Sequence record: OR529409.1
Length of the DNA: 64,000 nucleotides
Strand: one strand, 5' to 3'
Under the pieces are notes generated by a model. That model searched no databases. It was given only the letters and a program-made list of their open reading frames with translations, and had not been told where the DNA came from. Position numbers and translations under genes: made by a program. Shown here piece by piece: positions 4,165 through 33,041 of the stretch; position 1 is the stretch's first letter, and every line of letters begins with the position of its first letter.

Positions 4165-4722
4165 GTGATGATAATGAATTTAATTTTTCAAGAGTCTCCT
4201 GACCGCCACCAGGTATGGTTATTAACTAATGATATGGTGAAAGCGGTTGAGAGATCTCGTATAAGATTCGATCAGTTAAATCGAATCCCAGAATATCGAG
4301 ATCGTTTTGCGGAATCCGATATTATTGCTATTGCTGTTTTACAATACAGCATGAGCCTTAAATTGGGTCGTCCGCTCCAGGACGTGTTTGATCCAGACGC
4401 TTATGTGGGTGACGAAGGACTTGTCCTCAAGAGTAAGATTAGCAATGTATTAGCAGAACTCCCTCGTCTGACCGTTATAGCGGCGTTGAGCAATCCTGCT
4501 CGTTATTACATTAAGAAAGTGGGTAATGACGTTATTTTATGTCAAGGTGAGCTGGTTAAACCAGACACTAGCTGGACTGAGCTAAACGAATCTCTCTTCA
4601 CTCACGCATTATTAAAAGGGATTTATAGCCAATACGGCTACCATCAATTGCATTTCCGAGAATTGAACCGACCGCAACGAGATAGCTTTACGTTAGCCGA
4701 CGTTCTCCGCGTATTGTCTTAA
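4165..4722 (+). CDS. Conserved protein between helicase and capsid gene (phiKZ gp119-like, probable virion protein)
   Basis: 185-aa ORF in the syntenic position. Confidence 0.55.
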   Translation: MMIMNLIFQESPDRHQVWLLTNDMVKAVERSRIRFDQLNRIPEYRDRFAESDIIAIAVLQYSMSLKLGRPLQDVFDPDAYVGDEGLVLKSKISNVLAELPRLTVIAALSNPARYYIKKVGNDVILCQGELVKPDTSWTELNESLFTHALLKGIYSQYGYHQLHFRELNRPQRDSFTLADVLRVLS

Positions 4723-4810: not shown

Positions 4811-6997
4811 ATGAAGCGTACAATTAACGTCCGCAAAGGCTCCACTGCTGTAAAACCCCTGAACCTCGCGATGAGCGACATGTTTAGTCAGGGCGGCTTT
4901 AAATCTTTTACTGGTGTTGAAAACCTGGATACTGCGACCGACCAGTTCAATGCCATGTTTGCTGGCACCGAGTCACTGGCTAACGGTATTAGCCCAGAGT
5001 CTTCCAAACTGCTCAGCAACCTGACCAACTCTCAGCGTTTCGCGACCATCTCCAGCATCGCGTCGATGCAAAATGCATTCCCGACCGTTGATCGTCGCCT
5101 GGCTGACTTCGCCGGTACCGAAGGTTTCTCAATGGCGCAGTTTGCCGGTGAGTCCGCTAAAGTTAAAGGCGTGAACATCACTCTGAACGCCCTGTCTCAC
5201 CGCCAGACCGACGCTGCTGAAGCTCTGTTCACCACCGTCACTATCCCGTACGCGGAAGAGTACCTGGAGTTCTCCGTGCGTACCGCCGGCCTGGGTCGTT
5301 ACATCTACGGTGCTGCTGCTGGCGAACGTGCCTCTGAGCTGGTACCGGTAATGAGCCTGATCCGCAAAGGTAAAGCTTTCATGGCTGATACCCTGCGCAT
5401 GTATCCGGTTTATCCGACCGACTCGGCTGATCCGAACCGTAAATACTTCATGGCTGAGTCTGTAGCTGCTGCTACCGAAGCCACTTACGACAGCGCTGAT
5501 CCGCTGAACCGTCAAGCTCACAAGACCCAATACCTGAAAGTTCCGGTATCCGTACCGAACCTGGTTGGTCTGTCTGAAGCCCCGGGTCAGAACCCGTTCG
5601 AAACTTCTGATGAAGTTGAATCCAACTCCATCCAGATGACCAACGTCGCACTGACCGCCAACGTCGGCGCTTCCGGCTCTGCTACCGCAGTCGTACTGCG
5701 TATGCCGACCGTGAACATGTCTCAGGCGCATTTCGGTATCGCTGCAATGGGTGCTTCTTCTGACGATCGTCAGATGGACTTCCAGGTACAGGGTCTGCCG
5801 GCGTCTGCACTGTTCAACATCGGTAGCGATACCGTTACCACCGCACTGGATGCACTGAAAGCGAATGGCGCTCAGCCGTTCTTCTCTCTGAGCATCACCG
5901 GTACTTACCAGCGTCAGACCAATACCCTGAAAATCCAGGGCGGTTCTTTCGAACTGGAGTACATCAAAGATGCGGCTGGCAACAAACATCTGCCGACCAC
6001 TTCCAGCGCAACGATCAAAGCTCTGTTCGGCCTGTTCGCTGATGGCGAAATCGCCGGTGTTGAACTGCGTTACAACCACACCAACATCAACCGCGTGAAC
6101 TTCGGTTACCGTGTTGAAGTGTTTGACGCACGTAAAACTCTGACCACTCATCGTCAGACTCCGATCTCTGTTCGCTACCCGGTCAGCAAAGAAGATACCA
6201 ATGAGGAATCTCTGAGCTACGCGATCGATCAGATGGCGATCATCCTGAACGCACAGACCACCGCAAACGCGTTTACCAAAGCTGAAGAGCACGTTGATTA
6301 CGTGACCTCCATCAACGGTTCCGCGATCGTAGGTAACGAACAGGCGTCTAACGTCCTGGCTGGTATGCACTACGCTAACGCTGCTGCGATCAACCGTACT
6401 CTGAAACTGTCTGACATCGTGTCTACTCAGGACAGCGTCGGTGTAGTTGACAACATCTCTGCGGCACTGTGCAACACCCTGAGCGAAATGGCAGCAGCGC
6501 TGGCCACTAACTCCGGTCTGGCTGCTATTGCCGAATACACCCGTGAAAAACTGAAATGGCAGGTTGTTGCCCATCAGAACATGGGTCGTTACCTGATGCG
6601 TTCTGGCGACGCTCGTACCATGGGTGCGTATACCGACTTCGCGGTTGAACTGACTAACGTCGAAACCATGATCGGTAAATTCTACCTGGTACCGCAGTCC
6701 GAAACCGACGGCAACACCATCGACCCGCTGGGTGGTATGGGCGTGTGCGTTGATAAAGAGCACGTTGTTGTACAGGGCGACGTCACTCGTACCGATCGTC
6801 AGTTCGGTATCCTGATGACCATGCCGATCTTCCAACACCACTCTGTATGTCCGATCGTCGGCGTACTGACCGTTGAAGACGCTGTACTGGCTCTGAACGA
6901 CGAAGGCCTGATCGACGCTCTGGCTAAACAGCGCGTTGTGGTTAACGGCGTTGTACAGTCTGAAGTCGACGCTGTAGACGACGGTCAGCTGCCGTAA
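4811..6997 (+). CDS. Major capsid protein (phiKZ gp120 / SPN3US gp75-like)
   Basis: 728 aa; extreme optimal-codon bias (CTG, CGT, GGT, ACC, ATC); N-terminal propeptide with S/A/G-x-E cleavage motifs (GVE, GTE, AGE); synteny helicase-x-MCP-x-RNAP. Confidence 0.9.
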   Translation: MKRTINVRKGSTAVKPLNLAMSDMFSQGGFKSFTGVENLDTATDQFNAMFAGTESLANGISPESSKLLSNLTNSQRFATISSIASMQNAFPTVDRRLADFAGTEGFSMAQFAGESAKVKGVNITLNALSHRQTDAAEALFTTVTIPYAEEYLEFSVRTAGLGRYIYGAAAGERASELVPVMSLIRKGKAFMADTLRMYPVYPTDSADPNRKYFMAESVAAATEATYDSADPLNRQAHKTQYLKVPVSVPNLVGLSEAPGQNPFETSDEVESNSIQMTNVALTANVGASGSATAVVLRMPTVNMSQAHFGIAAMGASSDDRQMDFQVQGLPASALFNIGSDTVTTALDALKANGAQPFFSLSITGTYQRQTNTLKIQGGSFELEYIKDAAGNKHLPTTSSATIKALFGLFADGEIAGVELRYNHTNINRVNFGYRVEVFDARKTLTTHRQTPISVRYPVSKEDTNEESLSYAIDQMAIILNAQTTANAFTKAEEHVDYVTSINGSAIVGNEQASNVLAGMHYANAAAINRTLKLSDIVSTQDSVGVVDNISAALCNTLSEMAAALATNSGLAAIAEYTREKLKWQVVAHQNMGRYLMRSGDARTMGAYTDFAVELTNVETMIGKFYLVPQSETDGNTIDPLGGMGVCVDKEHVVVQGDVTRTDRQFGILMTMPIFQHHSVCPIVGVLTVEDAVLALNDEGLIDALAKQRVVVNGVVQSEVDAVDDGQLP

Positions 6998-8210: not shown

Positions 8211-9881
8211 ATGGATCCTAAGTTACTGAAAGCGGTATCGGCTACGATGCCTAAGTTTAATGAAACGATAGCTTCAGGTTTCCATCAACGAGAATTTGAG
8301 CAAATACATAAACGTTATGAATATCTTTTAAGAATGACGTTTGAACCCATTGAAAAGAAAGGAGTATGGTTTGTTGGCGTCAGGTCGGTACGACCTCATG
8401 AAATGTATAACGTCATCGCGAAGAACACACAGCAGAAAACCTTTGAAACAAACAAAGAAAGTCTTTATCCGGTTAAACTCGTCTTTAAATACGGGATGGA
8501 TAAAAATACTGCCAGGGAGATGGATCCTGTTTACGTACTCCTTCCGTTCTGTGATCGGTATGGGGATGTTTGGATCAGGGGAAGTCAATACAGCTTACAG
8601 ATCGTCCTCGCTGACCGAGGATTGAGCGTCACCAAAGACGATCAGATCTTCGTAAGACTCCTGGGATATAAATTCAAAGTAGGGACTGAGCAATATGAGT
8701 ATACTCAGATCCACAATGAAATAAATCCTGTCAGGGAAACCAACCTTCCTATCAACCTTCCGGCTAACCGCTTCTACGTGGCCAGTGAAGCGCGTCGTCC
8801 AAACCCAACTAAAACACCCACACCTTTATTGGCGTGGTATGTGTTCGCGGAGTATGGTTTTAGCGAAACCATGCGTAAGTTTGGGGAATGCGATTATGCG
8901 ATAGGTGATCGTGATGCGATCATTCAGCAATATAGTGAAGATAAGGGTTGGAAGCTGTTTGGCAGTAAAGGATTGGCGATTGGTAAAAGTATCACACCAT
9001 ATGTGAATTGCGGGTTAGCTATAGCGGCTAAACCATTAAACGAAAAACGAAGAGGAGAAATACCTAACGTTGCACAACAGTATATTGCGGCATTGCTTTA
9101 TCTGTGTGATGTTGGCGGAGAATTTATTGATTTGGATAAACTCGACGATAAATATTTTTGGCGTATGATGGTCGGACACGCCAGTATTAAAGCCGGAGGA
9201 AATCTCACCCATTTGGAAAAACAGATGGCGGATCACTTCGATTCCATGAACGAAGGTTTAGACCAAACAAGTATCCAACGATTCGCTGAGCAACGAATTG
9301 TGGTTAAAGATCGTTATGAATTGTTTAATTACATCATAGCGAACCGGGCTGAAATCGTTAAGACTTCCGATAAAGCCAATATGTTACATAAAGAAATTAG
9401 TTCTAGTGAGTTCACATTAGACAAACTGATTACCGCGGCTAACCGCTTTAAACACGATGTCAAAAACACAACAGAACTCAACTATGAACGTGTTAAGTCA
9501 TTCATGTCATCTCATTTCAAATTACGCGATATCGAATCGGCTGCTTGGGAATCTAACATGATCCAAGAAGCTACGCCGACAGATTGCCCTATCGCCGATT
9601 ATGGCTTTGGGGTGATGTCTCAGGCGAAAGTATTCGGTCCTCGTAATAACGGGAGAAACAGTGACTTTAACCCTAACGATCCCGCTAACTGCATACATGG
9701 CTCTGTACCTTTTGTGATGAGTTTCCAACGGGTGACTAAACCCGACCCAAACGCTTGCGGATTCTTAGCCCCCTGCGTACATTTGATCAACGACAAATAT
9801 TTGGGACTCAGACCAGAAGATGTGGAACTGTACGAAGCCACTGTGAGCAGACTTACTAAGTCTGAGGTTAAAATTAAATGA
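8211..9881 (+). CDS. Non-virion RNA polymerase beta subunit fragment (phiKZ gp123 / SPN3US gp77-like)
   Basis: 556 aa; PFCDRYGDVWIRGSQY segment, C-terminal ERVTKPDP..GFLAPC-like segment; two genes downstream of MCP as in phiKZ-like phages. Confidence 0.75.
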   Translation: MDPKLLKAVSATMPKFNETIASGFHQREFEQIHKRYEYLLRMTFEPIEKKGVWFVGVRSVRPHEMYNVIAKNTQQKTFETNKESLYPVKLVFKYGMDKNTAREMDPVYVLLPFCDRYGDVWIRGSQYSLQIVLADRGLSVTKDDQIFVRLLGYKFKVGTEQYEYTQIHNEINPVRETNLPINLPANRFYVASEARRPNPTKTPTPLLAWYVFAEYGFSETMRKFGECDYAIGDRDAIIQQYSEDKGWKLFGSKGLAIGKSITPYVNCGLAIAAKPLNEKRRGEIPNVAQQYIAALLYLCDVGGEFIDLDKLDDKYFWRMMVGHASIKAGGNLTHLEKQMADHFDSMNEGLDQTSIQRFAEQRIVVKDRYELFNYIIANRAEIVKTSDKANMLHKEISSSEFTLDKLITAANRFKHDVKNTTELNYERVKSFMSSHFKLRDIESAAWESNMIQEATPTDCPIADYGFGVMSQAKVFGPRNNGRNSDFNPNDPANCIHGSVPFVMSFQRVTKPDPNACGFLAPCVHLINDKYLGLRPEDVELYEATVSRLTKSEVKIK

Positions 9882-12271
9882 GCAGCATTCGTCCTACCAA
9901 TCGCGGTCATGGAGTGGGTATTCCTAACGATGATCCGAGCATGGGTAATGGTTTCGGTTCTTTGGCTACAGGAATGCAACAAAACAGCATGTACGGTCAA
10001 CAGCAACAAATGTTCGATCCGTCTGCGATGATGAAAATGATTTCAACGGGAGGCATGAACAGTAACCCAGCCTCCGGCGGTTGGGATTGGTCGAAAGTAG
10101 ATAGACCACAAAACCCTAATGCTGCGTTCTTGGATGAGTTTTTAGGACATCAGGAAGATGAACTCGAACACGCTTTGAAAATGGAAGCGCAGGCTTACGC
10201 AACTAAATTCGCAGCGCGTATTATCAATGACATTAAAACGAGAAACACAAGCGGATATTATAAGTTCTTCCTTAACGCGTATAATATCTTTGCACTGGTC
10301 CCTGATACGGGTCCTATGCTGTGTCCTATCAGAGGGAGGTTCATAGAGGTTATTAAGAATACTCAGGCAGCGCAATTGCGTATTGCAGGTCGTGGTGTGA
10401 CATTCGGCGCTCGTGATTTTGCTTTACAAATCATGGCTCAGAACCCACTTGACCAACGCCTGGTAGAAAACCTCTTCAGCACTGGTATCGCCAACGCCAT
10501 GTTTTTAGAAATGGTTGATTGGTTTGCTAAAACGGCTGATGGCAGAGACGCATATAGCAAACTGACTAACGAACTTAAGTTGACATTGACTAAATTACCT
10601 AAGTTCATTACTTACGCCGGGGAATGCTTCCAGTTCTTTAATATGGATAGTCCGTATAATGATCTGAGCCCAGTCCCTAAAACTTCTCCAAACCCAGATC
10701 AGAACATGAGTCAATATGTGGTCAGATCGACGTCAGGGAGTGGGATGGAGTGGTTAGGTTTCCAGCATTCTACAGAATCTCAACAGCAGAAGGAGATCCG
10801 AGAGATCAATGAATGGGTAGCGAATAATCTTCGTCACCGCCAAGAGTTCCAATATCAACAGGCTCAACAACAAACTCCCGACGCAGCGTATTGGTCTGGA
10901 CAGCAGCCACAACAACAGTATAGCTTTGGTGAGCTTCATACTAAACGTGTTGATTTCGAAAACGTCAATCCCGATAACGTGGCGGATTTCTCTTTAGAGA
11001 ACTTCAAACGCATCCCAGGGACCGATAAATACGTTGTTGATGAAACCACTTGGAGTTATTTCTCCAAGGCATTCAAACGGGCTTATCGTCCTTACGGTGA
11101 ACTTTTTGCCGGAACATACGGAATACGAGTCGTCAAGATCAATTTCGAGCTCAACGACGGTTGGGTGGACAATGTTCTGTTTATAGAAGGAGTGACTCCA
11201 GCCATGGCTTTAGCCAACCCAGCGATGCTACTTCCACATCTCGAGACTGACCAGCAAGGTAACGTGGTCATTGTCGATGAAGTGGTCCTACCAAAAGAGA
11301 AGGACGAAGAAACTGGCATTGAAATGGTTCCGTTACAGAAAGTTAAAGTAATGGAACACGCCCCGACAGCGGTTGTTGTTCCCGAGGTTGTCACAGGTGA
11401 TAGCTTTGGAAATATCGAGACCGTAATCGACACCATGTTCGATACCGTTAAACCGTCAACATCCGGATTGTTCGGTGTTGCCATCCCGGTAGAGAACTGG
11501 AAACGTTTCTTCGTAGAAGACAGCACAATCGTAGAAGAAATCTACCTTCGTTTACCTTGGCTGGTTAAAGGTAACGGCGGCGGTACTCCACCTACGTTCT
11601 TTGATTTCGTTTCAGAGATACAAAAGACGATGGATCATTATATCGGTTGTGATGAACTTCGTGGATTTGTTGAAACTCATATCACTGACACGGTTAACCG
11701 TTGGTTGGTGGATACAAGAGGTTACGGCGGCAATCGTGACGATCAATATCGCTTCAGAATTAATGGGATCTTCAGCAATCTCAAGAATCTGATTAATCAC
11801 TTAGAGAAAAACGATCCCGATACGTTCAGTGTTTTGATCGATCCTAAGCGGTTTAAGCGACTCTTTACTAAGTGTAAACTGTTTGCACCGCGTGAGACAC
11901 GTTCAGCGCTCTTGAATGGCGCTCTGCCGAGTTCTCCAACTCAGGCTGCGATAGCTAAGGAAAATGATAAGAAAGCTATGGTCGTCCTTACAGACGTCGT
12001 AGTGACCCGTATCGGCAATATCCTCGCACCTAATACACAAAAGACCGTTATCAACGTAAAACGTTCAGCGTTCCCAGAGATGTTCTCTTTAATCGAACGT
12101 TCATTTGGGAAAACCTCCGATCTGTTACCAGAAGGTGTTGAACAGGTACTGTCTTTTGTCAGTGACGACAGTCTTTGGACTTTCAACACATCAGGATTTG
12201 ATTCCAACGTCGCTGTTATGCGTAAGGTACCCAGAACCCAAGGCATGCTTAATTTTAAATTAATTGAATAA
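9878..12271 (+). CDS. Large conserved hypothetical protein with M/G/N/Q-rich low-complexity regions
   Basis: 797 aa; ATGA overlap with the RNAP gene. Confidence 0.7.
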   Translation: MSSIRPTNRGHGVGIPNDDPSMGNGFGSLATGMQQNSMYGQQQQMFDPSAMMKMISTGGMNSNPASGGWDWSKVDRPQNPNAAFLDEFLGHQEDELEHALKMEAQAYATKFAARIINDIKTRNTSGYYKFFLNAYNIFALVPDTGPMLCPIRGRFIEVIKNTQAAQLRIAGRGVTFGARDFALQIMAQNPLDQRLVENLFSTGIANAMFLEMVDWFAKTADGRDAYSKLTNELKLTLTKLPKFITYAGECFQFFNMDSPYNDLSPVPKTSPNPDQNMSQYVVRSTSGSGMEWLGFQHSTESQQQKEIREINEWVANNLRHRQEFQYQQAQQQTPDAAYWSGQQPQQQYSFGELHTKRVDFENVNPDNVADFSLENFKRIPGTDKYVVDETTWSYFSKAFKRAYRPYGELFAGTYGIRVVKINFELNDGWVDNVLFIEGVTPAMALANPAMLLPHLETDQQGNVVIVDEVVLPKEKDEETGIEMVPLQKVKVMEHAPTAVVVPEVVTGDSFGNIETVIDTMFDTVKPSTSGLFGVAIPVENWKRFFVEDSTIVEEIYLRLPWLVKGNGGGTPPTFFDFVSEIQKTMDHYIGCDELRGFVETHITDTVNRWLVDTRGYGGNRDDQYRFRINGIFSNLKNLINHLEKNDPDTFSVLIDPKRFKRLFTKCKLFAPRETRSALLNGALPSSPTQAAIAKENDKKAMVVLTDVVVTRIGNILAPNTQKTVINVKRSAFPEMFSLIERSFGKTSDLLPEGVEQVLSFVSDDSLWTFNTSGFDSNVAVMRKVPRTQGMLNFKLIE

Positions 12272-12313
12272 CCCCACCATCCTAGAACCATTTAATCGAT
12301 TAAGTAGTTCCTT

Positions 12314-12346
12314 GGGGGTAGGCGTTTAAACCAAACGCCTACCCCC
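12314..12346. terminator. GC-rich hairpin upstream of tnpB (terminator or IS left-end hairpin)
   Basis: GGGGGTAGGCGTTT-AAACC-AAACGCCTACCCCC, perfect 14-bp stem, no clear U-tract. Confidence 0.5.
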
Positions 12347-12364
12347 ATATTGTAAAGGTGATCC

Positions 12365-13501
12365 ATGTTTATTTCTAAAAAGGGTAAACTCCGCCCGCAT
12401 AAAGATGATTTAGAAACAATCGAAAAAACCTTTGGTTGCCGGAGGTTTGTATGGAATCAGTTATTAGGATTACATAAAGAGCAATATGAAAAATGGGAAA
12501 AAGGAGAGGTATCTGAAAAACCTAAGATTTCTCTTTTACGGTTTCAGAATAAGTTAATGGAATTGAAATCGGCTAATCCTTGGTTATACGAAGTTTCTAA
12601 TGTTGTTTTACAACAGTCCTTCATTGACCTTTATAATGCCTTTCATAACTTCTTTAAAGGTTTGTCAGGTTACCCTAAATTTAAATCGAAAAGAGGAATC
12701 CAATCTTTTCGATTTTCAGGCAGCCGGGATATTCACGTCGATAATTTCAAATTAAGAATACCCAAATGTAAGAATAGGTCCTCTATTTCTAAAAACGTTA
12801 TACTCAACAACCCGTCTTCTTATACTGTTACTAAAGACCTCGTAGGAGATTATTTTATTTCCTTCGTAGACCAAATTGAAGAGATCGAACAAGAACCTGA
12901 GAGCATAGGAAAGTTCGTAGGAATCGATTTGGGTATTAAATCTTTAGCGGTTATTAAACATCTTAACGGTAACGTAGAGGAAATAGAAAATCCTAAATTT
13001 TATCGTAAAGCTGAAAAACGTTTAAAAATGCTACAACGCCGTTTAAGTAAGAAACAGAAAGGGAGTAATAACCGAAATAAAGCTAGAATTAAATTAGCGA
13101 AATACTGCCGTAAAGTCGCGAATCAACGTAATGACTTTTTACATAAATTATCCACTCGATTAATTACCGAAAACCAAGGGATTAATATCGAGGATTTAAA
13201 TGTAAAAGGTATGATCAAAAACCATAACTTAGCAAAGTCGATTCAAGATGCATCTTTTGGTATGTTCAGGAACATGTTAGAATATAAAGCTAATCGTTAC
13301 ACTGTACCAAAAATCATCGGTGTTGTAAACAGGCTCTATCCCAGCACGCAGATTTGTTCTCATTGTAACACCAAAAGTGAAGTGAAAATCAAACTTCATA
13401 TCCGAGAATGGACTTGTGGTCACTGCGGAACTCATCACGATCGTGACATCAATGCTGCTACGAATATCCTTAACCAAGGATTACGTTTAACAACCTCCTA
13501 G
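12365..13501 (+). CDS. tnpB: RNA-guided endonuclease TnpB (IS200/IS605 OrfB)
   Basis: HTH FGCRRFVWN; RuvC-I GIDLGIK; RuvC-II IEDLNV; Zn ribbon CSHC/CGHC; RuvC-III HDRDINAATNI; visibly more AT-rich than its flanks. Confidence 0.95.
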   Translation: MFISKKGKLRPHKDDLETIEKTFGCRRFVWNQLLGLHKEQYEKWEKGEVSEKPKISLLRFQNKLMELKSANPWLYEVSNVVLQQSFIDLYNAFHNFFKGLSGYPKFKSKRGIQSFRFSGSRDIHVDNFKLRIPKCKNRSSISKNVILNNPSSYTVTKDLVGDYFISFVDQIEEIEQEPESIGKFVGIDLGIKSLAVIKHLNGNVEEIENPKFYRKAEKRLKMLQRRLSKKQKGSNNRNKARIKLAKYCRKVANQRNDFLHKLSTRLITENQGINIEDLNVKGMIKNHNLAKSIQDASFGMFRNMLEYKANRYTVPKIIGVVNRLYPSTQICSHCNTKSEVKIKLHIREWTCGHCGTHHDRDINAATNILNQGLRLTTS

Positions 13502-13640
13502 GTTAAGGGTATTTATTACCCTTGGTCTGAGGGGAAGTTAAGCCTGTGGAGACAAGTTGCAGTAGGGACTTTCTATGAAGCAGGAAGTTATTTATTTAAC
13601 AAGACACTAAGTAGTTACTATCGGACATCCTTCCTTAACG
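13420..13640 (+). ncRNA. Predicted TnpB omegaRNA (scaffold plus about 16-nt guide)
   Basis: After the tnpB stop: hairpin AAGGGTA-TTTAT-TACCCTT, then GCCTGTGGAG (13542), GAAGCAGGAA (13577) and AGTAGTTAC (ending 13618), motifs I recall as typical of IS605/IS1341 right ends. Boundaries approximate. Confidence 0.6.
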
Positions 13641-13686
13641 GGAGGGTATCCCTTAATAACCATTTCCCACAAAAAAGGAATACGAA

Positions 13687-14322
13687 ATGAATCGTCCAAT
13701 TTTTAAAATTAGTCAGCACGCGCAGTTGTCGATCCCGGCCCTCATCGATGTTACAGAAAATGAAGCGGAATGCTCGTCACTTGTTTACGGCCTCCATCCT
13801 TCCATGACCGGGGTATTCTCTGAACGCCAGAAGGATTCAATGGCAGAGAGTCTTTACCTAATGGGTCAGTACGCCGAAATCATTCCCAGGAATAAGCCGG
13901 AGTGTACGATTGATTATCATCCCATCACTAACGAGCATTACCTTAAATCGTTTAAACATTATTACGAAGCATGGGTTGCTTTGGGTAGAGATGAAGTGGT
14001 GATGCAGGGAGCTACTGTTAGGGTTTCGTCGTTTTTATTATTAAGGACTATGTTCAATGGGGTCATAGGAATTCTACCTTATCTCGACCCCAAAGGACAT
14101 CGGATGCAAGCAAAGGAATACGCTAAATTAGACGATTTGGTTAAACTGACCTACGGCGTGCCCGCTGGGTCATTCTCGGCGACCCCCGATTACCAGGTTG
14201 TTCCTAAAATAGAGGTGCGGGAACAGATCGTGATGAGCTTCACTGACAAATACGGTAATGTCATCACCATCACTGGAATCGATAGAGAAAAGATGATCGA
14301 ACAGATAGAAAAATTAAAGTAA
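13687..14322 (+). CDS. Hypothetical protein
   Basis: 211 aa; RBS AAGGA; followed by a terminator. Confidence 0.7.
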   Translation: MNRPIFKISQHAQLSIPALIDVTENEAECSSLVYGLHPSMTGVFSERQKDSMAESLYLMGQYAEIIPRNKPECTIDYHPITNEHYLKSFKHYYEAWVALGRDEVVMQGATVRVSSFLLLRTMFNGVIGILPYLDPKGHRMQAKEYAKLDDLVKLTYGVPAGSFSATPDYQVVPKIEVREQIVMSFTDKYGNVITITGIDREKMIEQIEKLK

Positions 14323-14328
14323 TCGTCT

Positions 14329-14360
14329 TCCCTACCACTCCTTAACTGGAGTGGTAGGGA
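14329..14360 (+). terminator. Intrinsic terminator
   Basis: TCCCTACCACTCC-TTAACT-GGAGTGGTAGGGA. Confidence 0.8.
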
Positions 14361-14401
14361 GTAAGAAAGCTTTAATTTTTTAACATGAAGATTTTTATAA
14401 G

Positions 14402-14420
14402 TCGATATCATTCAGGTGTA
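14402..14420 (+). promoter_or_regulatory. Putative early promoter TCGATATCATTCAGGTGTA
   Basis: 16/19 identical to TCGATATTATTTATGTGTA at 56890; both follow a terminator and T-tract and precede an RBS. Confidence 0.55.
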
Positions 14421-14464
14421 TAAACAACAAGTATTTTAATTCTTATTCACTAAAGAGGTCCAAA

Positions 14465-15037
14465 ATGGAAATTCGTAAAGATATGATCAATGAAATCGCC
14501 GCTCGTATCATCTCTGGTTGCAACGACGTGGAAGCCAGTGTCCGCGAAAAGCTGCTGCGTAATTTGGTTAATGGTGAGATCTGGCAGTTCGAGCTCAATG
14601 AAACTGAGCAAGCGGAACTGATCGCGATCGTAAGCAAAGAGTTCGGTATTTCCGATCTGGTCTACGTCGAACCGCAGAAAAACATTTCTGAAGAAGATGT
14701 CGCCAAAGTCGCTGCCAGTGTTAACGGGCATGTCGAACACAAATATCTGAATCTGCGAAATGCGATGGCGGTCGGCGCAGTACTCGGTGCCGGTGCGGCC
14801 ATCTTAAAAGAAGGTGCGAACGCAATTAATGCCGGTGCTGGTGTGGTCGGCGCTGCTGTTTCTTACGGCGTGGGTTATCTGGCTGACAAGAAACATATCG
14901 GTATGGGTAATCAGTACGCTGATGTCGCGGCAGGTATTGTTGCCGGTGGTGTTATCGGTGGCGGCGCTGTATTTGGCGCGGGCTTCGTCACCAAACGTTT
15001 CTTCAGCAATGAAGAAGTTGAAGTTGTTGCAGAGTAA
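14465..15037 (+). CDS. Glycine-zipper membrane protein A
   Basis: RBS GAGG; optimal codons; C-terminal GxxxG-rich helices (GAVLGAGA, GVVGAAVSYGVGYLAD, GIVAGGVIGGG). Confidence 0.8.
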   Translation: MEIRKDMINEIAARIISGCNDVEASVREKLLRNLVNGEIWQFELNETEQAELIAIVSKEFGISDLVYVEPQKNISEEDVAKVAASVNGHVEHKYLNLRNAMAVGAVLGAGAAILKEGANAINAGAGVVGAAVSYGVGYLADKKHIGMGNQYADVAAGIVAGGVIGGGAVFGAGFVTKRFFSNEEVEVVAE

Positions 15038-15100
15038 TAAACGCATCTGAAATATCCGATGCATCTTAAATTAAACTATCAATAGTAAGGAAATACGATC

Positions 15101-15493
15101 ATGAAAAAAGAAAACACTGAACTGACTGGTGCTGAACTCGACGAAGCTAAAGCAATGCTGGCTGTTGATGCAGAAACTTCTCTGTTCGACGATATCTGTG
15201 AAAAACTCGGTGGCTACGTAGCTACCGACAAACAGAAAAGCCACGTGAAAGCCGCAGTGATCGGTGGTGTTATCGGCACCGCTCTGAGCATGGCGAGCAA
15301 ACCATCTGTCGGCACGCTGATCGGTGGCGTGGTTGGTACCGCAGGCGGCGCTTATGTGGGTAGCCGTATCGCTGATGATCTGAGCAATCAGTTCATTGAC
15401 AAACTGCTCACCGCTGACATTGGCTTCCTGTGCAGCACCATCGGGGCGTCCATCGGTAGTGCATTAACCCCGAGTAAAGTCGAAGCGAACTAA
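15101..15493 (+). CDS. Glycine-zipper membrane protein B
   Basis: RBS AAGGA; GGVIGTA, KPSVGTLIGGVVGTAGGAYVGSRIAD. Confidence 0.8.
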   Translation: MKKENTELTGAELDEAKAMLAVDAETSLFDDICEKLGGYVATDKQKSHVKAAVIGGVIGTALSMASKPSVGTLIGGVVGTAGGAYVGSRIADDLSNQFIDKLLTADIGFLCSTIGASIGSALTPSKVEAN

Positions 15494-15561
15494 ATCTTCT
15501 AGTTCGTTTAAACACTGTTAAATTTTAGGCAACTCAACATCAAAACGTAAGAGGTATTATC

Positions 15562-15957
15562 ATGGATATGGCAAACAAACCTGCAGTTAACAACATCACT
15601 GTGTCAGAAGAAGAAATTCTGAAAAAGCTGGCCGGTCACAAATCCACCGATGTCAACTATCGGGTCGGTCGAATCGCTGGTGTGATGGGCGCAGTCGTCG
15701 GTGGTGCACATCGCACTATCACTCAAGGTATTAAACCGTCAACTGTCGTCGGCGCGGTAGTCGGCGGTTTAGTTGGATACAAAACTGGTAAGCTCGCGGA
15801 TAGCTTCAGCGGCCTGACGGGAACGCATTCCCCGATCGCAGATGTCGGCGCATTCACAGCAGGTTACGGTGTAACTCTGGGCATGAGCGCCCTGGCAGCC
15901 ACCTTCGATCAGTACATCACTCCGCTGTACGAATCAGAAGAAGAAACCGAAGAATAA
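15562..15957 (+). CDS. Glycine-zipper membrane protein C
   Basis: RBS GAGGT; GVMGAVVGG, KPSTVVGAVVGGLVGYKTGKLAD; acidic tail. Confidence 0.8.
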   Translation: MDMANKPAVNNITVSEEEILKKLAGHKSTDVNYRVGRIAGVMGAVVGGAHRTITQGIKPSTVVGAVVGGLVGYKTGKLADSFSGLTGTHSPIADVGAFTAGYGVTLGMSALAATFDQYITPLYESEEETEE

Positions 15958-15963
15958 GAAAGT

Positions 15964-15995
15964 TAACTCCTCTACCCTTACGGGTAGAGGAGTTA
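15964..15995. terminator. Bidirectional terminator
   Basis: TAACTCCTCTACCC-TTAC-GGGTAGAGGAGTTA between convergent genes. Confidence 0.85.
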
Positions 15996-16015
15996 CTTAA
16001 TTACTTATTTTTTTT

Positions 16016-18985
16016 TTATTCCGGGATGGAATCGTCAACTTGGAAGTCGTCTTTCTTATCGCCGTCTTCTTCTGTCTTTGTTTCTTCCTCAGTTTGGTTT
16101 TCTTCTTCTTCGGAAGTGTCTGTTCCCGTCTCTTCTTCCTCAGTCGTTCCCCCTTCCCCAGGCAAATCTTCCTCTATAGAGAAATCGTCGTCTGTCTGAG
16201 TTCCCTCTTCAGGGTTACCCTCATCAGCAGGTGGGGCGCCGAACTCATCCGCCGGAGGCTGTTCCGCAGGCATGATCTTTTCCAAACGTTTAGTCAGTCG
16301 ATCAGTCTCTTTATTCCAGGCCTTCATGAACTGTTCTAAGAACATTCCACTGTTGTCCACGTACTGAGATATGTTGTGGATTAACGAATAGACCCCGCCC
16401 TCTTTACCCTTGTTACCGATAAGATCGAACGGCATAGGGAGGTTGAATCGATCATAAAGTTCAATTAGATAAGTACTGCGAATAATGGATTTGACTTTCT
16501 CAATATCCAACCCGCCGCTACCATCAGTTTTGTTCATGATCTGTTCAATCAGACCGGAAGTCCCTGACATTTCAACCCACGAGTTTACAAACTGATTGAC
16601 CGTATCGATTTTATCTTTCAGTTTGGTTACTGATTCCTGAGTAGCCGGAGTCGGTAAGGTCACGGTGAGGTTGTTGATAAAGTCAGCCAGGATAACTTCA
16701 ACGATGTGCTCGTTAGTCCCCTCTATCTCTTCGCCGTTATCAGGTTTCCACAACGATTTGTTCTCGTTAATAGTGTCGACTAAACGATTCAACATAACCT
16801 GGTTAACCAACATATCCTTACGTTCGATCTCGGCAACAAAGTCACCCAATACCTTCTGCCAGATCAATGTTTGGTTGCGGAGCATTTCCTGCTCGGCCAA
16901 TGCTTCGACCTGGAAGTTGGTTCCTTCTTCTTTATCGTCCAACCAAGTACGTTGGAGTTTAAAAGTGGAGGCGATGTTGTTGAGGAGGTTCTGTCTGGAG
17001 GTTTCGTCGATAGCTTTGAAGTTACCGCGTTCAACCGGTTCCAAAGTTATCTTGGGTCCGACCATCCACGGGTTACCGTTACTATTAACCTCAACGATCA
17101 GGGATTGAGTCTTCATTGCTTCAACAATGTCGGGTACTGAAACAGTACCAGAGTTTACCACGTTGTGAAGCGTTGGGTTTACCCTGAAGAACTGCGCCCT
17201 GGCCGTAGCAATCGTACCATCCGGATCAACGTCGTCTTCTTCCAGATCAACCACTAAACGCTGACGGGTTTGAGCCTGATCCAAGTTAGCCAGAATGTCA
17301 GCAGTATCCAATGCTGCCAGACGACCGATATGGAGTTTAGCCTGGTTGGTTAAAGAAGAACCAATACCAAAGCTATTGTAGTCAAACGCGACGTAGGTGA
17401 AGTACTCTGCCGGAATGTAAAGAACCCGAACACCCTGTTGCTTGAAAGAACGAGCCAGGAAGATCTTCAGGTTAGCTTCAACCAATTCAACAGAAATATT
17501 TTTCCCACTCACCCCGGAAGCAATAGCCTGGATAAGGGATTTTTCTATTTGATCCTTCGATAACAGGGTGAATTCTGACATATCGAAGTCACAATCGGCA
17601 CCTTGCTGAACTTTCTTCAGGTTAGCGATAAGTGCGTTGGTTCCACCTGTTTTATTAGGTGTGTCGATCTTATCTTTCTGACCCTTAGTGGACTGATAGA
17701 AGTTAAAGTCTCTTGTGCTTTTTAAGAACTCACCGTTGGATGGATCAAGCAAGGCGAACCCACCAATGAGCTTAGTTCTATCGCCTTCCATATGGACGGG
17801 AATAAAAGCTTCACTCGGAATATGATACCGTAACGGAATTCCATAAACTGAGGTGTCGTAAACCCCTGGGCTACGAACACTGATGGTTTGACGATGCGGG
17901 TAACTGCGGTGTGGATAAAACTCATTCTGAAGAACTTCCAGTTGGCTTTCCGGCAAGATCTGAGTTTTAGTATCGGCATTAGGCGTCCCGTTCTTACGTT
18001 TGGCCTTAGTGTCGTCAGGTTCTTTATTCGACTTCTTAGGATCTTCCTTTTTCTTATCCTTGGTCGCCGTAGTCTCTTCTTCGCCTTCCTCACCTTTTTT
18101 CTCTAGACGAGATTTAATAAGGGAAGCGAGATCTTCTGTCCCGCCGATGTCGTTAACGATCTTCTTCGTTAAAACCTGATTCACGGAACGAAGAGCCAGA
18201 ACCGCCGGGTTGTCTGTCAAGGTAATCCCGAACCCTTCGCCTTCATCATTCTCGATCAATTCGAATTCAGTTGAGGCGTCTGGGGTGGAGTGGCTAAACA
18301 AAGCCTCTAGCCCGTGAACGACGTTATTGAGCTGCTTAGGGCCCCTCACCAATCCTTTGTTGATGGCGAGAAACTTACCGTCCACATTTTTAAATTGCTT
18401 CTCAATCTCTGGTTTTATCTGAGTGTTAATGTAACTTTCGTTACCCGTCACTCCGTCTTCACCAAACTGCTGACCGTTGATAAGGTGATCCAGCGCAGGT
18501 CTAGAGATGTTCAAAAGCACGTAGGACCCTGTACCGAACAACCCATCTTTGATGAACTCCGGTAATAGCTTCTCGATTTTATAGTCGCTGGTATAGTAGG
18601 TTTCCGTCTTACGGAGCAACTCTTCATGCAGCTTAGTATTTTTAAATTGAGACCGCAAAGTATCGTGAGTAAGGATCCTTTCCTGTAATCCGTTCGGGTA
18701 GAGGAGAAGCGTCTTCCAGATTAATTCCGCGCGCGAAACATAAGGTGTGATTTCCCTTAAGTCAGTTGCCGCATTGATATTGCTGGCAATGATATCGCTG
18801 ATCTTTTTTAATTTGGAAGGCTGGACTTTACGTTCTTTCTCATCCGTATTTCTGGTATGATCTCTCTCGTCCCGAACGAGGTTCCGAACGACGCTTTTTA
18901 ACGAGGGGCTGATATTGTTTAAATTACCCCTGAGTTTGGTTTGATCGAGGTAATCATATCCTCGGGTTGAACGCGTTCTATTCAT
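16016..18985 (-). CDS. Portal protein (phiKZ gp129 / SPN3US gp81-like)
   Basis: 989 aa, helical, acidic disordered C-tail, head-protease-type motifs (GNES, GLEA); reverse orientation, divergent from the gp128-like gene as in phiKZ-like synteny. Confidence 0.7.
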   Translation of the reverse strand: MNRTRSTRGYDYLDQTKLRGNLNNISPSLKSVVRNLVRDERDHTRNTDEKERKVQPSKLKKISDIIASNINAATDLREITPYVSRAELIWKTLLLYPNGLQERILTHDTLRSQFKNTKLHEELLRKTETYYTSDYKIEKLLPEFIKDGLFGTGSYVLLNISRPALDHLINGQQFGEDGVTGNESYINTQIKPEIEKQFKNVDGKFLAINKGLVRGPKQLNNVVHGLEALFSHSTPDASTEFELIENDEGEGFGITLTDNPAVLALRSVNQVLTKKIVNDIGGTEDLASLIKSRLEKKGEEGEEETTATKDKKKEDPKKSNKEPDDTKAKRKNGTPNADTKTQILPESQLEVLQNEFYPHRSYPHRQTISVRSPGVYDTSVYGIPLRYHIPSEAFIPVHMEGDRTKLIGGFALLDPSNGEFLKSTRDFNFYQSTKGQKDKIDTPNKTGGTNALIANLKKVQQGADCDFDMSEFTLLSKDQIEKSLIQAIASGVSGKNISVELVEANLKIFLARSFKQQGVRVLYIPAEYFTYVAFDYNSFGIGSSLTNQAKLHIGRLAALDTADILANLDQAQTRQRLVVDLEEDDVDPDGTIATARAQFFRVNPTLHNVVNSGTVSVPDIVEAMKTQSLIVEVNSNGNPWMVGPKITLEPVERGNFKAIDETSRQNLLNNIASTFKLQRTWLDDKEEGTNFQVEALAEQEMLRNQTLIWQKVLGDFVAEIERKDMLVNQVMLNRLVDTINENKSLWKPDNGEEIEGTNEHIVEVILADFINNLTVTLPTPATQESVTKLKDKIDTVNQFVNSWVEMSGTSGLIEQIMNKTDGSGGLDIEKVKSIIRSTYLIELYDRFNLPMPFDLIGNKGKEGGVYSLIHNISQYVDNSGMFLEQFMKAWNKETDRLTKRLEKIMPAEQPPADEFGAPPADEGNPEEGTQTDDDFSIEEDLPGEGGTTEEEETGTDTSEEEENQTEEETKTEEDGDKKDDFQVDDSIPE

Positions 18986-29342: not shown

Positions 29343-29397
29343 ATTCAGGCTTAATATTCGTGGAGTGTGATACTCACTCCATCACGAGGTGAGATCA

Positions 29398-32300
29398 ATG
29401 AACTATCCTAATATTCCCGAATACCGTTTGGATATCACGGGGAAGAACCCAGAAAACTTGATTCCTTTCGAGCATCTTCAAAGGGAAGATAATGATCGAA
29501 AAATGATCGTCGTCCCACGTCACGCTCCCTTCTTTATCGACAGCGTGATTTTGAGCTTCCCTGATGGCACCCCAATGGTTTACGGAACCCATTATGAATT
29601 CTTCAACATCATGGGTGAGCTTTCCAGAAGAACCGGTAAAGCGGTCGGTTGTTTTATTCGCATTTTGGATAAAACCATAACTCGGTTTAACGCCCGCTAT
29701 CAAACAGTAGGTTCGGTATCTCTCTTTGATAAGAGTTTCCTGGATCTCTATAATACCGTCATAGACGATGAGCGAGCTGTTTGGTTCGACGATATCGCCA
29801 ACAAGCCTATATTGTTTGATCCAGAGCAGCATGGTCATGACGTCAGGTACGGCGTATACGCATTTAAAGACCTCGCAGATGCTTTCGAGCAGATGGTCGC
29901 TAACACCGTAGGTGGGGAAGGCTATCACGCCCCGTACGAAGAATTCTTTGTTCAGCGTATCAACAACGCTATCAGTTACCTTTCACAAGTACAGAGTCGT
30001 TGCATCGCACTCATTAACGAACACGCCAGTAACAAGATCAACGTGCATGGGATCGATAATGTTAAAGTGGGATTGGGTAACGTTGATAACATCGGGACTT
30101 ATACTTCCGATAATTGGGGAGATCCTATCGATGATAAACATCGTATAACCCCAGGGTATCTGAAAAAGTTAGCTGAAAACACCACTGTGGATCTCAGTAA
30201 CTTGGTCCAACCCGGCGTTCTCCCAATTGCACGCTACGGTGAAAACTTTTACATCCCTCCGGTCATAGATGGATCTTTTAAAGGCGTCGGGACCAGACAA
30301 CCTTGGCGAGTCGCCTGTTTAGAAAGAAACGGTTATCTCGTTGGCATAGGTAATTACAAGGATGTCAATACTGACGTGTTGATGTACATGTATAACAAAA
30401 CTCCGTTCGTTTCCCCGACTAATTCCAGCAACTGGATAAACACGCGTTATGAGTATAAACCTACCCGCGTCGTCGAAGATGACGTTAAACTCACTACCGT
30501 CATTAAAGGCGGGGATTACCGCTGGATGATCGTGGGGAATGACCAAACTAACAAGTGGTACGTGGTTAACTGTAATGGGACGTTTAATCCCAACAGTCAT
30601 GTTTTGGTTCCCATCAGTAATACCGAATTCTTTACCAACGTCGCGCACCTTCGCATGTGCGTTTGTGGGAATTACATTTATCTTTTTAATGTGAGTGATA
30701 CACAAAGCGATGGTCGAAAATTTGTGACAATAAGAAAGATCGATATCAGCAACTTCGATATCAACTTAGAAAGCGTTCAGCTAACTACACCTTCGCTGAT
30801 TTACACTGATTCTTCTAACGTCAGTAAATCTTCCCTCACTGGTACGTTTGACCCGATCTCCTTTACAAAAAATTCGGGCGGAAAGGTCAGTAGAGTATTG
30901 GGTAATTTTAACCCTGTTCTTGACGGCGTGGGGATAGAGCGCGACATCCACATTGAGATGATCGCCGATCCTAGTAATCCGACCGTGTCTTATATGCGGT
31001 GGTGGGCGCCAGCGGTACATGTATTGGGGACGTTGACTGTGACATTGACTTACTCACCAGCTTGGAAACTACAGGAGAGTAACGGCGTCACTACAATGAC
31101 TTGGGCGAGGGGAAATAGTACTTCGACATTCAATATTAGTGCCTGGAACTCTAATTACGCGCCTTGGGCCGGTGGGCAGAACACGGGGAACTCCGATTTT
31201 GTTTCACAGGTCGTTTCTTGGCATCATCAAACTGCGATGGGGAATGGGTTCACGGGCGGGTCTTCGATCCTTTCTAATAACGCGAGATTTTCTTGCGCGT
31301 CGTCACACTGGAACTTCTTCCCACTCCAGACCGCGACAAGCATGTCTGATTTCTTCACCACCTCGGACCCTACTACGTTTGTTGGTGCTAATCCGGCTAT
31401 CACTAATCTTGATCCGAATGCCGCCGGGGAATATAACTTAAGAACGTTAAGCTGTGGGATTTCCAACACCACGGTTTATGGTTCGGCCCCAGCGTCAAGT
31501 TGTCACAGCACCCTTCCTTTTACAGAGAGTGGGGGGGGGGTGATTCATTATGAGATTACTAAGTCAGAAGTCAACGACGATGAATTTGTTCATACCGCCA
31601 AACTAAGAACAGGCGAGCGAACAATCGCTTCAGTCTATGATAACAGTGTTTATAACCACATGCCGTACACCAACGACATTTATAAAACCAATATCCATCC
31701 CCGTGGTGTGAGGATCTCTTATGTCGATGAACTGACGACCACCAACAAAGGCGAGACTCTTTTTGGCGTCACCGGAGGGACTGTCTTTACATTGGGTACG
31801 AATAAACAAGACGGCATGTTAACTTATTCGTATACCACGGTAAGGGACACGGCGACCAGAACCCTGTCATTTAATCCAACACTATATGTGCGAATAACTG
31901 ACGCCCTGGTCAAATCTCTGGTAACAGCCAACTTCCCAGATGCAGTGGCGTATTACCAGAAAGCGTGGACTTTAGTTTGGTGCCCAGGAAAGGGAAGTGT
32001 CATTCAACCTATGCTGTTCGTAGAATGGATGGGAGTTAATGGGGATAACAGGGCGTATGTTGGAGTGATGACGTTAAACATCGTTAAAAATCCAACCCTG
32101 GCGGCCAATCAGACCGAGACGGTGAACGGCGTTAAAACTTGTGTGATGAATGTTGGAGATATTACCGTCGCCAATAAGTACACTGTTAACAACGGAACCT
32201 ATTTAGGTGATCGCTCCTGGTTTGATACTGTTGGGAATCATTACGTCAATACGGGTTATATGACCGTTTACCGTAATGCTTCAGGGGAAGTCTCCTTTTA

Positions 32301-33012
32301 CTGGGGATCGACCAACTCTAAAAACTTTGCCGGGCCGACGGTTTATGGTGTGGCTAAAGCAGCATATCTCTCAGGTAAAATGTCGGGGCCGACAGTTATT
32401 TCTGCCATTAATAACTACCCTGGCGGAAGAGATATGTTGGGATCCGTAGTCTACGCGTTAAAAGGGGTCGGTCTATTGCTGATTTCTGATACGATGGCTA
32501 CCGATATCTTTGTGGGCGGTGGTATAACACCGGCTAAGCTGGCAGGTAACACCTACCAGTCGGTTCTGGACGGTTTTGCCAACCCGGCGCTGTTAGGATC
32601 GTTCTACATCATCGCTGACATCATTCCGGTCAATCAATGGACGTTGTTCTTCTCAGCGAGCAAGATCGTTTTGAAAGGAACCTATTTCGAACTGCCCGTG
32701 GGTACTCTGACATTAACAGATTACTTCACCAATGTTCAAAATAAAACGTTCTATCTGTTTTTAAAACTCACTGAAGGTAGCCCGGTATATGAGTTGTCAT
32801 CAACTATGTTGTCGGAAACCTCGACGTGTATGTTGATAGCGACGGTTACTACCGATAACTTCAGCATTGTTTCTGTAGATACACAAAAGGTCTTTTCAAT
32901 GACCGGCTATCGCGTGTCGTCTCAAGCTATCGGTTCGATCATACCTGGGTCGACCGGGGGGATCAACGAATTGGGCGAGACACCGTGGCTGTCGTCTACC
33001 TTGGTTGATTAA
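29398..33012 (+). CDS. Tail fibre/baseplate paralog 1 (phiKZ gp131-like family)
   Basis: ATG at 29398 after GAGGTG; shared N-domain, GLGNVDN linker, PPVIDGSFKG motif and C-terminal LPVGTL...NKTFYL...SSQAIGSIIP domain. Confidence 0.8.
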   Translation: MNYPNIPEYRLDITGKNPENLIPFEHLQREDNDRKMIVVPRHAPFFIDSVILSFPDGTPMVYGTHYEFFNIMGELSRRTGKAVGCFIRILDKTITRFNARYQTVGSVSLFDKSFLDLYNTVIDDERAVWFDDIANKPILFDPEQHGHDVRYGVYAFKDLADAFEQMVANTVGGEGYHAPYEEFFVQRINNAISYLSQVQSRCIALINEHASNKINVHGIDNVKVGLGNVDNIGTYTSDNWGDPIDDKHRITPGYLKKLAENTTVDLSNLVQPGVLPIARYGENFYIPPVIDGSFKGVGTRQPWRVACLERNGYLVGIGNYKDVNTDVLMYMYNKTPFVSPTNSSNWINTRYEYKPTRVVEDDVKLTTVIKGGDYRWMIVGNDQTNKWYVVNCNGTFNPNSHVLVPISNTEFFTNVAHLRMCVCGNYIYLFNVSDTQSDGRKFVTIRKIDISNFDINLESVQLTTPSLIYTDSSNVSKSSLTGTFDPISFTKNSGGKVSRVLGNFNPVLDGVGIERDIHIEMIADPSNPTVSYMRWWAPAVHVLGTLTVTLTYSPAWKLQESNGVTTMTWARGNSTSTFNISAWNSNYAPWAGGQNTGNSDFVSQVVSWHHQTAMGNGFTGGSSILSNNARFSCASSHWNFFPLQTATSMSDFFTTSDPTTFVGANPAITNLDPNAAGEYNLRTLSCGISNTTVYGSAPASSCHSTLPFTESGGGVIHYEITKSEVNDDEFVHTAKLRTGERTIASVYDNSVYNHMPYTNDIYKTNIHPRGVRISYVDELTTTNKGETLFGVTGGTVFTLGTNKQDGMLTYSYTTVRDTATRTLSFNPTLYVRITDALVKSLVTANFPDAVAYYQKAWTLVWCPGKGSVIQPMLFVEWMGVNGDNRAYVGVMTLNIVKNPTLAANQTETVNGVKTCVMNVGDITVANKYTVNNGTYLGDRSWFDTVGNHYVNTGYMTVYRNASGEVSFYWGSTNSKNFAGPTVYGVAKAAYLSGKMSGPTVISAINNYPGGRDMLGSVVYALKGVGLLLISDTMATDIFVGGGITPAKLAGNTYQSVLDGFANPALLGSFYIIADIIPVNQWTLFFSASKIVLKGTYFELPVGTLTLTDYFTNVQNKTFYLFLKLTEGSPVYELSSTMLSETSTCMLIATVTTDNFSIVSVDTQKVFSMTGYRVSSQAIGSIIPGSTGGINELGETPWLSSTLVD
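31531..31540 (+). repeat. G10 homopolymer inside the fibre gene
   Basis: AGT GGGGGGGGGG TGATTC, read directly. Confidence 0.95.
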
Positions 33013-33018
33013 CCCTTT

Positions 33019-33041
33019 AAAAGGAGGGGCCCCCTCCTTTT
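33019..33041 (+). terminator. Hairpin between fibre paralogs
   Basis: AAAAGGAGGGG-C-CCCCTCCTTTT plus T-tract; supports ATG 33059 as the next start. Confidence 0.7.

Follow-up and report, generated by a model that had tools for sequence, protein, structure and literature searches.

How does a gene for the RNA-guided nuclease TnpB persist in a phage in which no TnpA transposase is found? The question is raised by a stretch of 64,000 nucleotides (the window), which is identical (100%) to bases 1-64000 of Stenotrophomonas phage BUCTxx100 (OR529409.1, 252,190 bp) and in which tnpB lies in a 1307-bp insert, hereafter the cassette. TnpB is thought to persist by restoring IS200/IS605 copies after their excision by TnpA. 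Comparison with related phages suggests that the cassette is probably a TnpA-independent, RNA-guided homing or competition element. Among the roles offered in a preliminary description of this DNA, a selfish homing element that cuts the empty allele is favoured, because empty alleles exist, the guide matches them beside a pentamer resembling a transposon-adjacent motif (TAM), the allele of the carrier itself is disrupted, and the TAM class co-varies with the protein. The cassette and its junctions comprise the following features, given by position in the window:

12296..12300, plus strand: inferred TAM TCGAT of class 1 (N-C-G/T-A-T/C), which immediately precedes the protospacer in the empty alleles and is kept at the left junction.
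12301..12309, plus strand: left copy of a 9-bp direct duplication, TAAGTAGTT, equal to protospacer positions 1-9.
12310..12364, plus strand: 55-nt leader, present only in the BUCTxx100 copy, with a perfect 14-bp hairpin at 12314-12346.
12365..13501, plus strand: tnpB, 378 aa, with a class 1 TAM module (Q83, Q84, G119), the RuvC residues D188/E276/D361 and a zinc ribbon (C331/C334/C351/C354).
13466..13607 (5' limit approximate), plus strand: omegaRNA scaffold, overlapping the last tnpB codons, with a nested hairpin across the stop codon.
Within the scaffold, plus strand: motifs GCCTGTGGAG (13542) and GAAGCAGGAA (13577), an AT-rich linker (13587-13600) and the terminal CAAGACAC (13600-13607).
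13608..13616, plus strand: right copy of the 9-bp duplication TAAGTAGTT, equal to guide positions 1-9.
13608..13625, plus strand: first 18 nt of the guide, TAAGTAGTTACTATCGGA, shared with the empty alleles of Miami, KPN8 and YC1, which first differ from it at position 19.
13623..13651, plus strand: phage hairpin, starting at guide position 16 and also present in the empty alleles.

Over positions 9000-17000, BUCTxx100 shares 96-97% identity with four Klebsiella phages, namely Miami, YC1, KPN8 and phiKp_32, and 91% with Raoultella phage VB_ZK_P1. The cassette is absent at this site (site A) from Miami, KPN8, YC1 and phiKp_32 in a near-identical local context, and the empty intergenic region reads through as ...ATCGAT TAAGTAGTT ACTATCGG..., with the two TAAGTAGTT copies bracketing the insert (12310-13616) in the carrier. 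The alignment with relatives lacking tnpB that had been proposed as a check recovered the empty site, and in Miami, KPN8 and YC1 it presents TCGAT followed by 18/18 guide-matching bases. In BUCTxx100 the target is split after 9 nt by the cassette, and the self allele retains only the TAM and a 9-nt seed because the left TAAGTAGTT copy equals protospacer positions 1-9. The guide has only two near-matches in the BUCTxx100 genome, namely the left junction (TAM and 9-nt seed, 4 mismatches in 16) and the guide-encoding DNA, which is preceded by GACAC, not a TAM. The cassette thus behaves as a homing gene does, being present or absent among close relatives, with its target available in the empty allele and disrupted in the carrier.

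Two relatives have a changed target. phiKp_32 (L193) has three substitutions in the first 16 protospacer bases (positions 6, 11 and 12), with the 30 nt upstream unchanged, and VB_ZK_P1 (L002 6931-7049) has a 15-nt insertion with a second AGTAGTT exactly after protospacer position 9. These protospacers are candidate resistant or escape alleles, or footprints. The VB_ZK_P1 insertion coincides with the position of the left junction of the BUCTxx100 cassette.

The register of the guide was read from the right ends of the copies. The scaffolds of eight aligned copies all stop at (C)AAGACA plus one base, with unrelated sequence beyond. About 100 distant TnpB loci (36-46% identity; Y1 tnpA just upstream in 18) contain the motifs AAGCCTGYGGAG and GAAGCAGGAAG; there GAAGCAGGAAG is followed by one or two GC-rich hairpins, a terminal ...GTTCAC or ...GTCAA and then unrelated flank, and the phage AAGACAN stands at the position of this terminal motif. 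This right-end register, shared across all copies and the distant relatives, places the element end at 13607 and the guide start at 13608. The flank is colinear with the empty allele at at least 12 sites. The preliminary description had listed three scaffold-like motifs and a guide from 13619. Two of the motifs, GCCTGTGGAG and GAAGCAGGAA, proved to be conserved omegaRNA motifs common to 99 distant TnpB loci; the third, AGTAGTTAC (13610-13618), is target DNA found in the empty allele of Miami, KPN8 and YC1, and the guide start had to be moved 11 nt upstream, since the element ends at CAAGACAC in register with the other copies. We also considered ATTAT as both TAM and transposon-encoded motif, with the element ending after ATTAT, and rejected this reading because copies B, E and F, which have identical scaffolds, diverge right after CAAGACAN and because the terminal motif of the distant relatives lies at the CAAGACAN position. 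The site A target DNA GTAGTTAC (13610-13618) is similar to the terminal motif GTAGTTCAC that is canonical at the right end of distant TnpA-associated relatives, a similarity that may be accidental or a relic of a far older element.

The distance from motif to end is 20 AT-rich nt in the window (including GTTATTTATTTAAC at 13587) versus a median of 44 nt in the distant relatives. The suggestion that a GC-rich hairpin is replaced here by AT-rich sequence is therefore well founded, as the relatives have hairpins after GAAGCAGGAAG; in all copies of the jumbo-phage clade the right-end hairpin is replaced by 10-14 AT-rich nt, whereas the approximately 100 distant relatives have it. The ends had been called degraded, which is right in that the hairpins are gone, but the state is a stable clade-wide architecture, seen at at least 15 sites plus Pseudomonas phage EL, and not recent decay. 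In the predicted fold of the 3' region, the last codons form a conserved hairpin, a long nested stem spans the stop codon, and GCCUGUGGAG is followed by a short stem; covariation in this fold is weak (3 compensatory pairs only) because the copies are too similar. No omegaRNA family was matched in Rfam, where only a chance Yfr10 hit below threshold was obtained, and a scan with sigma-70 promoter and T-tract terminator consensus sequences gave nothing above shuffled controls. The hairpin at 13623-13651, proposed earlier as a terminator defining the RNA 3' end, exists and could well mark where the tnpB/omegaRNA transcript ends; it belongs to the phage itself and was there before the cassette, as the empty alleles have it.

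Close relatives of this TnpB (62-81% identity) were found at three places in VB_ZK_P1, two in phiKp_32 and one in Miami, and also in one 252.8-kb metagenomic contig and about 16 other assemblies, and EL-like phages have a 51% relative. Outside these jumbo phages, relatives reached at most 46% identity in two locus scans, a larger protein search gave few members at 47-53% identity whose context is unknown, and a scan of IMG/VR gave distant relatives only (37-39%). Genomes carry from 0 copies (YC1 and KPN8) to 3, and BUCTxx100 has one, so that its genome could serve as the empty-allele reference for most other sites. Fifteen distinct insertion sites (A to O), each occupied in only some close relatives, were mapped onto it; K and M did not resolve against BUCTxx100, H gave its left junction only, and the third VB_ZK_P1 copy was left out. 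Occupation of sites D, F, G and L was seen in more than one independent sample. Every copy has an exact right junction; the left side varies, with these outcomes:

Sites A, B, C, G, I, K and L: direct duplication of 7-9 bp.
Site E: 1-bp overlap.
Sites D, F and N: target loss of 19-215 bp.
Sites J (123 nt) and O: diverged duplicate of the interrupted region, with the gene kept intact.
Sites A, E, G and I: foreign 5' DNA of 40-151 nt with a fossil C-N-A-Y/ATTAT junction (the slash marks the junction).

Three sites are less simple. At site J (L178 2290-2500 and 3744-3870) the insertion lies 123 nt before the gene end and a diverged replacement 3' end stands on the left of the cassette; site O (L190 1-47) has a diverged flank duplicate of approximately 25 nt, akin to site J. 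Site M (L183, right flank 1754-1775) is a complex rearrangement, in which the right flank opens with the inverted left flank, GTCTTTAGCCGACGAA versus TTCGTCGGCTAAAGAC (window approximately 55325-55340).

In each empty allele, the five bases preceding the stretch that matches the guide were taken as the TAM. On this basis the sites fall into two classes:

Class 1, sites A, B, C, H, J, K and O: C at -4 (7/7), G or T at -3 (7/7), A at -2 (7/7), T or C at -1 (7/7).
Class 2, sites D, E, F, G, I, L and N: variable at -4, A at -3 (6/7), T or C at -2 (7/7), G at -1 (7/7).

Among 12 proteins, six per class, 16 alignment columns split exactly by class and cluster at residues 57-66, 83-87 and 118-122. 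In the TnpB of ISDra2, Q80 hydrogen-bonds the A at -2, and T123/N124 read positions -4 and -5 (PMC10097598). Our alignment places residue 83 at Q80 and residues 119-120 at T123/N124, and residue 83 is Gln in class 1, with A at -2, and Tyr in class 2. Sites N and O, fetched after the rule had been formulated, both fit it. That TAM and residues co-vary despite heavy recombination is the strongest indication that cleavage of the empty allele is seen by selection, and it independently confirms the predicted guide register.

Judged by its sequence, tnpB is intact and maintained by selection. The 378-aa protein matches HTH_OrfB_IS605 (E 4e-8), OrfB_IS605 (1e-31) and Cas12f1-like_TNB (6e-20) of Pfam over its full length, all past cut-offs, and residues 8-373 align with ISDra2 TnpB (8EXA/8H1J; E 3.7e-57). 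The alignment bears out the earlier statement that the D-E-D triad of RuvC and the zinc ribbon are intact: D188, E276, D361 and C331/C334/C351/C354 are all present, and they are invariant in seven paralogs from related phages. The ratio of nonsynonymous to synonymous substitution rates (dN/dS) is 0.11-0.30 for all pairs of tnpB copies.

The best-matching paralog switches at least 7 times along the BUCTxx100 cassette. The region around 12936-13025 has 99% identity to a VB_ZK_P1 copy, and 13476-13565 has 100% identity to tnpB_1 of phiKp_32, whose protein is only 63% identical overall. The cassette is thus a mosaic of the paralogs of other phages, which implies exchange during co-infection. Site G holds a D-type cassette in one contig. 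In another (L016; 3001-4130, tandem right end 4215-4270) the cassette is of B type, the final 28 nt of a D-type right end come after it, and tnpB is frameshifted from about residue 93 onwards, which suggests either that one cassette replaced another and decayed or that the assembly is at fault.

Most copies have about 20-25 nt, ATTAT...GTCGGAGGAA, ahead of the ATG. At site L only CATT (4 nt) stands ahead of tnpB, and a duplicated copy of the ribosome-binding site of the downstream gene is re-used. No conserved hairpin was found at the left ends of the copies, the hairpin of the BUCTxx100 leader being unique to that copy; it is followed by ATATTGT (12347-12353), similar to the C-N-A-Y/ATTAT junction motif of other copies, and then by a ribosome-binding region. 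The 55-nt leader had no match in 50,697 phage records or in the fetched TnpB loci. The idea that ATATTAT/AGTAGTT is a widespread phage promoter motif was dropped, as only 2 TATATTAT and no enrichment were found in the 64 kb.

Three features of the junctions stand out: the right junction always lies at the scaffold-guide boundary, 7-9-bp duplications of the target run from guide position 1 after the TAM, and left ends are ragged, in some copies with 40-150 nt of DNA brought from a previous site. We tentatively raise the possibility, suggested by these junctions and rather less probable than not, that the clade colonises new sites by an undescribed TnpA-independent route anchored at the omegaRNA/guide end. 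Such junctions would be compatible with one-sided copying that depends on TnpB and is primed at the protospacer, the template being either DNA (synthesis-dependent strand annealing with end joining) or RNA, namely the tnpB-omegaRNA transcript; alternatively, illegitimate recombination could insert cassettes at random, with selection retaining those that have a working guide and TAM. Fill-in of a staggered TnpB cut was rejected as the source of the duplications, since these begin at guide position 1 and TnpB cuts far from the TAM. A DDE-type transposon was also rejected, as the cassette ends have no terminal inverted repeats when judged by eye.

In the mechanism that we propose, the TnpB-omegaRNA cassette, streamlined by the loss of TnpA and of the DNA hairpins that TnpA requires, would act as a free-standing homing endonuclease gene of a lytic jumbo phage. 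It would be transcribed by read-through from the upstream operon or from its own leader, and the omegaRNA 3' end would be set at the phage hairpin. During co-infection TnpB-omegaRNA would cut cassette-free genomes; recombinational repair off the carrier genome would then copy the cassette in (homing), or the cut may just handicap the competitor. Jumps to new sites would be rare, right-end-anchored and TnpA-independent.

Could the cassette instead be an ordinary non-autonomous IS200/IS605 passenger, supplied with TnpA in trans from the host or another element, with TnpB acting in restorative homing after excision? TnpB-only (IS1341-type) elements are common, and both the protein and the omegaRNA are clear homologs of those of TnpA-associated elements, but the subterminal hairpins for TnpA binding are missing at both ends in every copy. 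In canonical IS200/IS605 peel-and-paste transposition, the insertion lies immediately 3' of the TAM and no duplication arises; the copies described here have 7-9-bp duplications or deletions and variable left ends, of which peel-and-paste leaves none. The phage itself lacks tnpA: the earlier remark that there is none in the window extends to the full 252-kb BUCTxx100 genome, in which no cognate tnpA was found by tblastn with 18 TnpA proteins from the distant loci (best E 0.038) or by search with a hidden Markov model built from them. Among 50,697 phage records searched for TnpA, 123 were positive and none of them is listed as Miami-like or EL-like. None of the marks of an IS200/IS605 element mobilised by Y1 TnpA was seen, as tnpA and subterminal hairpins are absent and target duplications are present. 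The nearest relatives outside jumbo phages, at most 46% identical apart from the 47-53% members of the protein search, also point to a long evolution within jumbo phages, and we regard the passenger explanation as very unlikely. A domesticated regulator that binds without cutting, as TldR does, or an inert, recently stranded relic is the least probable alternative and would be surprising. The TAM and 9-nt seed of the carrier just upstream of its own gene could permit binding without cleavage, and the L016 copy is frameshifted; however, neither the catalytic triad nor the zinc ribbon varies, dN/dS is low throughout, the TAM-reading residues change in step with the empty-site TAM, and the guide consists of ordinary flanking DNA and not of a conserved regulatory target. 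The regulator alternative of the preliminary description accordingly finds no support, given an intact nuclease under purifying selection whose guide is simply flanking DNA.

An inter-phage weapon, in which the cut destroys or delays a cassette-free competitor and copying of the cassette is incidental, is closer to our reading, as it requires the same molecular activity as homing, and the variant protospacers of phiKp_32 and VB_ZK_P1 resemble escape alleles. An intron-encoded nuclease of phage PhiPA3 reportedly serves in the competition of nucleus-forming phages. As the mainly operative role it is nonetheless unlikely, since the recurrence of the cassette at sites D, F, G and L in independent samples and the mosaic exchange show that the DNA itself spreads. 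A weapon and a homing element do not exclude each other, and a review notes that homing and competitor killing can coexist (PMC13565253). The passenger, the pure weapon and the regulator or relic are each less likely than the homing or competition element.

Several points weigh against the homing or competition element. No co-conversion tract is visible, the flanks from -1.2 kb to +0.6 kb being almost identical to Miami. It is conceivable in principle that the empty alleles arose by precise deletion between the two 9-bp repeat copies and are not ancestral, and simple homing accounts neither for the 7-9-bp duplications nor for the variable left ends. The TAM classes were recognised post hoc, with two independent sites only as a test. 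If the genome replicates in a chimallin shell, a cytoplasmic TnpB would need import to reach its target.

The following genes lie upstream of tnpB:

4811-6997: major head protein.
8211-9881: homolog of a non-virion RNA polymerase (nvRNAP) subunit, phiKZ gp123 (PHIKZ123); PDB 7OGP chain E, E 4e-10.

The earlier placement of tnpB directly behind an nvRNAP-beta operon is roughly correct as to the gp123 homolog, but an overlapping 797-aa gene intervenes immediately upstream of tnpB, and no known homolog of it was found. The chimallin-encoding phages listed as having the nucleus-forming core genome in common include Miami and Pseudomonas phage EL (PMC10299810 supplement). The putative chimallin-family, nucleus-forming label of BUCTxx100 rests on this literature on Miami and EL (PMC10299810) plus the gp123-like nvRNAP subunit.

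Other features of the record and the window were observed. BUCTxx100 is named for Stenotrophomonas maltophilia, yet it is 96-97% identical over 8 kb to four Klebsiella pneumoniae phages, and the host label or host range of the record deserves a check. An Acb1 gene, directed against the cyclic-oligonucleotide-based anti-phage signalling system (CBASS), was found at 55531-55998 (Pfam E 9e-14), and a borderline Tad2-like gene at 56482-56805 (23.4 bits versus a cut-off of 25). The TnpB sites E, M and I of the relatives (55247, approximately 55336 and 56448) lie within 1.3 kb in this Acb1/Tad2-like block, a possible accessory-gene hot spot. Two adjacent paralogous genes of approximately 1200 aa (29389-33012 and 33005-36571) both match the same tail/virion-protein PHROGs, and the pair looks like a tandem duplication of a tail-fibre-like gene. 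A hairpin-like repeat of approximately 30-36 nt, probably a shared terminator-type repeat, occurs in several intergenic regions (L011 4921-4960, L012 approximately 24283, L013 approximately 19901, L014 approximately 7018 and approximately 35619; 100% identity over 29-36 nt).

A whole TnpB lineage thus appears to live without TnpA in lytic phages, and RNA-guided homing or competition between co-infecting genomes seems to be its only plausible pay-off, a scenario that a 2026 review still regards as theoretical (PMC13565253). The lineage suits experiments, as it offers natural donor and recipient phages, candidate escape alleles and two TAM specificities that are swappable as a small protein module. 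If it is true that these phages replicate in a protein shell, the question arises of how an RNA-guided nuclease or its ribonucleoprotein enters. At 378 aa, with short scaffolds and a choice of two TAMs, such compact nucleases could also be of interest for tool development.

Among known systems, ISDra2 of Deinococcus radiodurans, whose TnpB structures are 8EXA and 8H1J, has the same domain order, RuvC D-E-D residues and zinc ribbon as the BUCTxx100 TnpB, and the guide equals the flank in both. The class 1 TAM TCGAT is one position off the TTGAT of ISDra2 (PMC10097598), and the Gln that reads the A at -2 is conserved. The clade differs from ISDra2 and other IS200/IS605 elements in that its cassettes have no TnpA and no left- or right-end hairpins, its left end is 4-150 nt of variable origin, its insertions show 7-9-bp duplications or deletions, it lives in lytic jumbo phages, and it has a second TAM class inside one recombining clade. 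Like the BUCTxx100 cassette, TldRs are derived from TnpB, have no TnpA and are stably retained outside a transposon; TldRs have lost the catalytic residues of RuvC and have guides aimed at promoters, whereas the triad of the BUCTxx100 TnpB is intact and invariant and its guide is its own flank.

PhiPA3 gp210 is said to be an HNH-type endonuclease of a group I intron in an RNA polymerase gene that acts in the competition between nucleus-forming phages. As reported, it resembles the cassette in its proposed role, being a nuclease aimed at the homologous locus of a co-infecting relative and encoded by a phage of the chimallin family, to which BUCTxx100 putatively belongs, and it differs in being protein-guided and intron-borne, while the BUCTxx100 enzyme is an RNA-guided RuvC nuclease encoded in intergenic DNA. 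The cassette also resembles the free-standing homing endonuclease genes of T-even phages (SegF, SegB, Mob), since it is an intergenic nuclease gene, polymorphic in close relatives, whose predicted target is the allele lacking it; spread by co-infection is expected for both, and the site J copy brings a diverged replacement of the 3' end of the interrupted gene. The "transposon non-restorative homing" framed in a recent review (PMC13565253) fits the same comparison. The difference is that the T-even protein enzymes must re-evolve their specificity, whereas an RNA-guided cassette gains its new flank as a target automatically.

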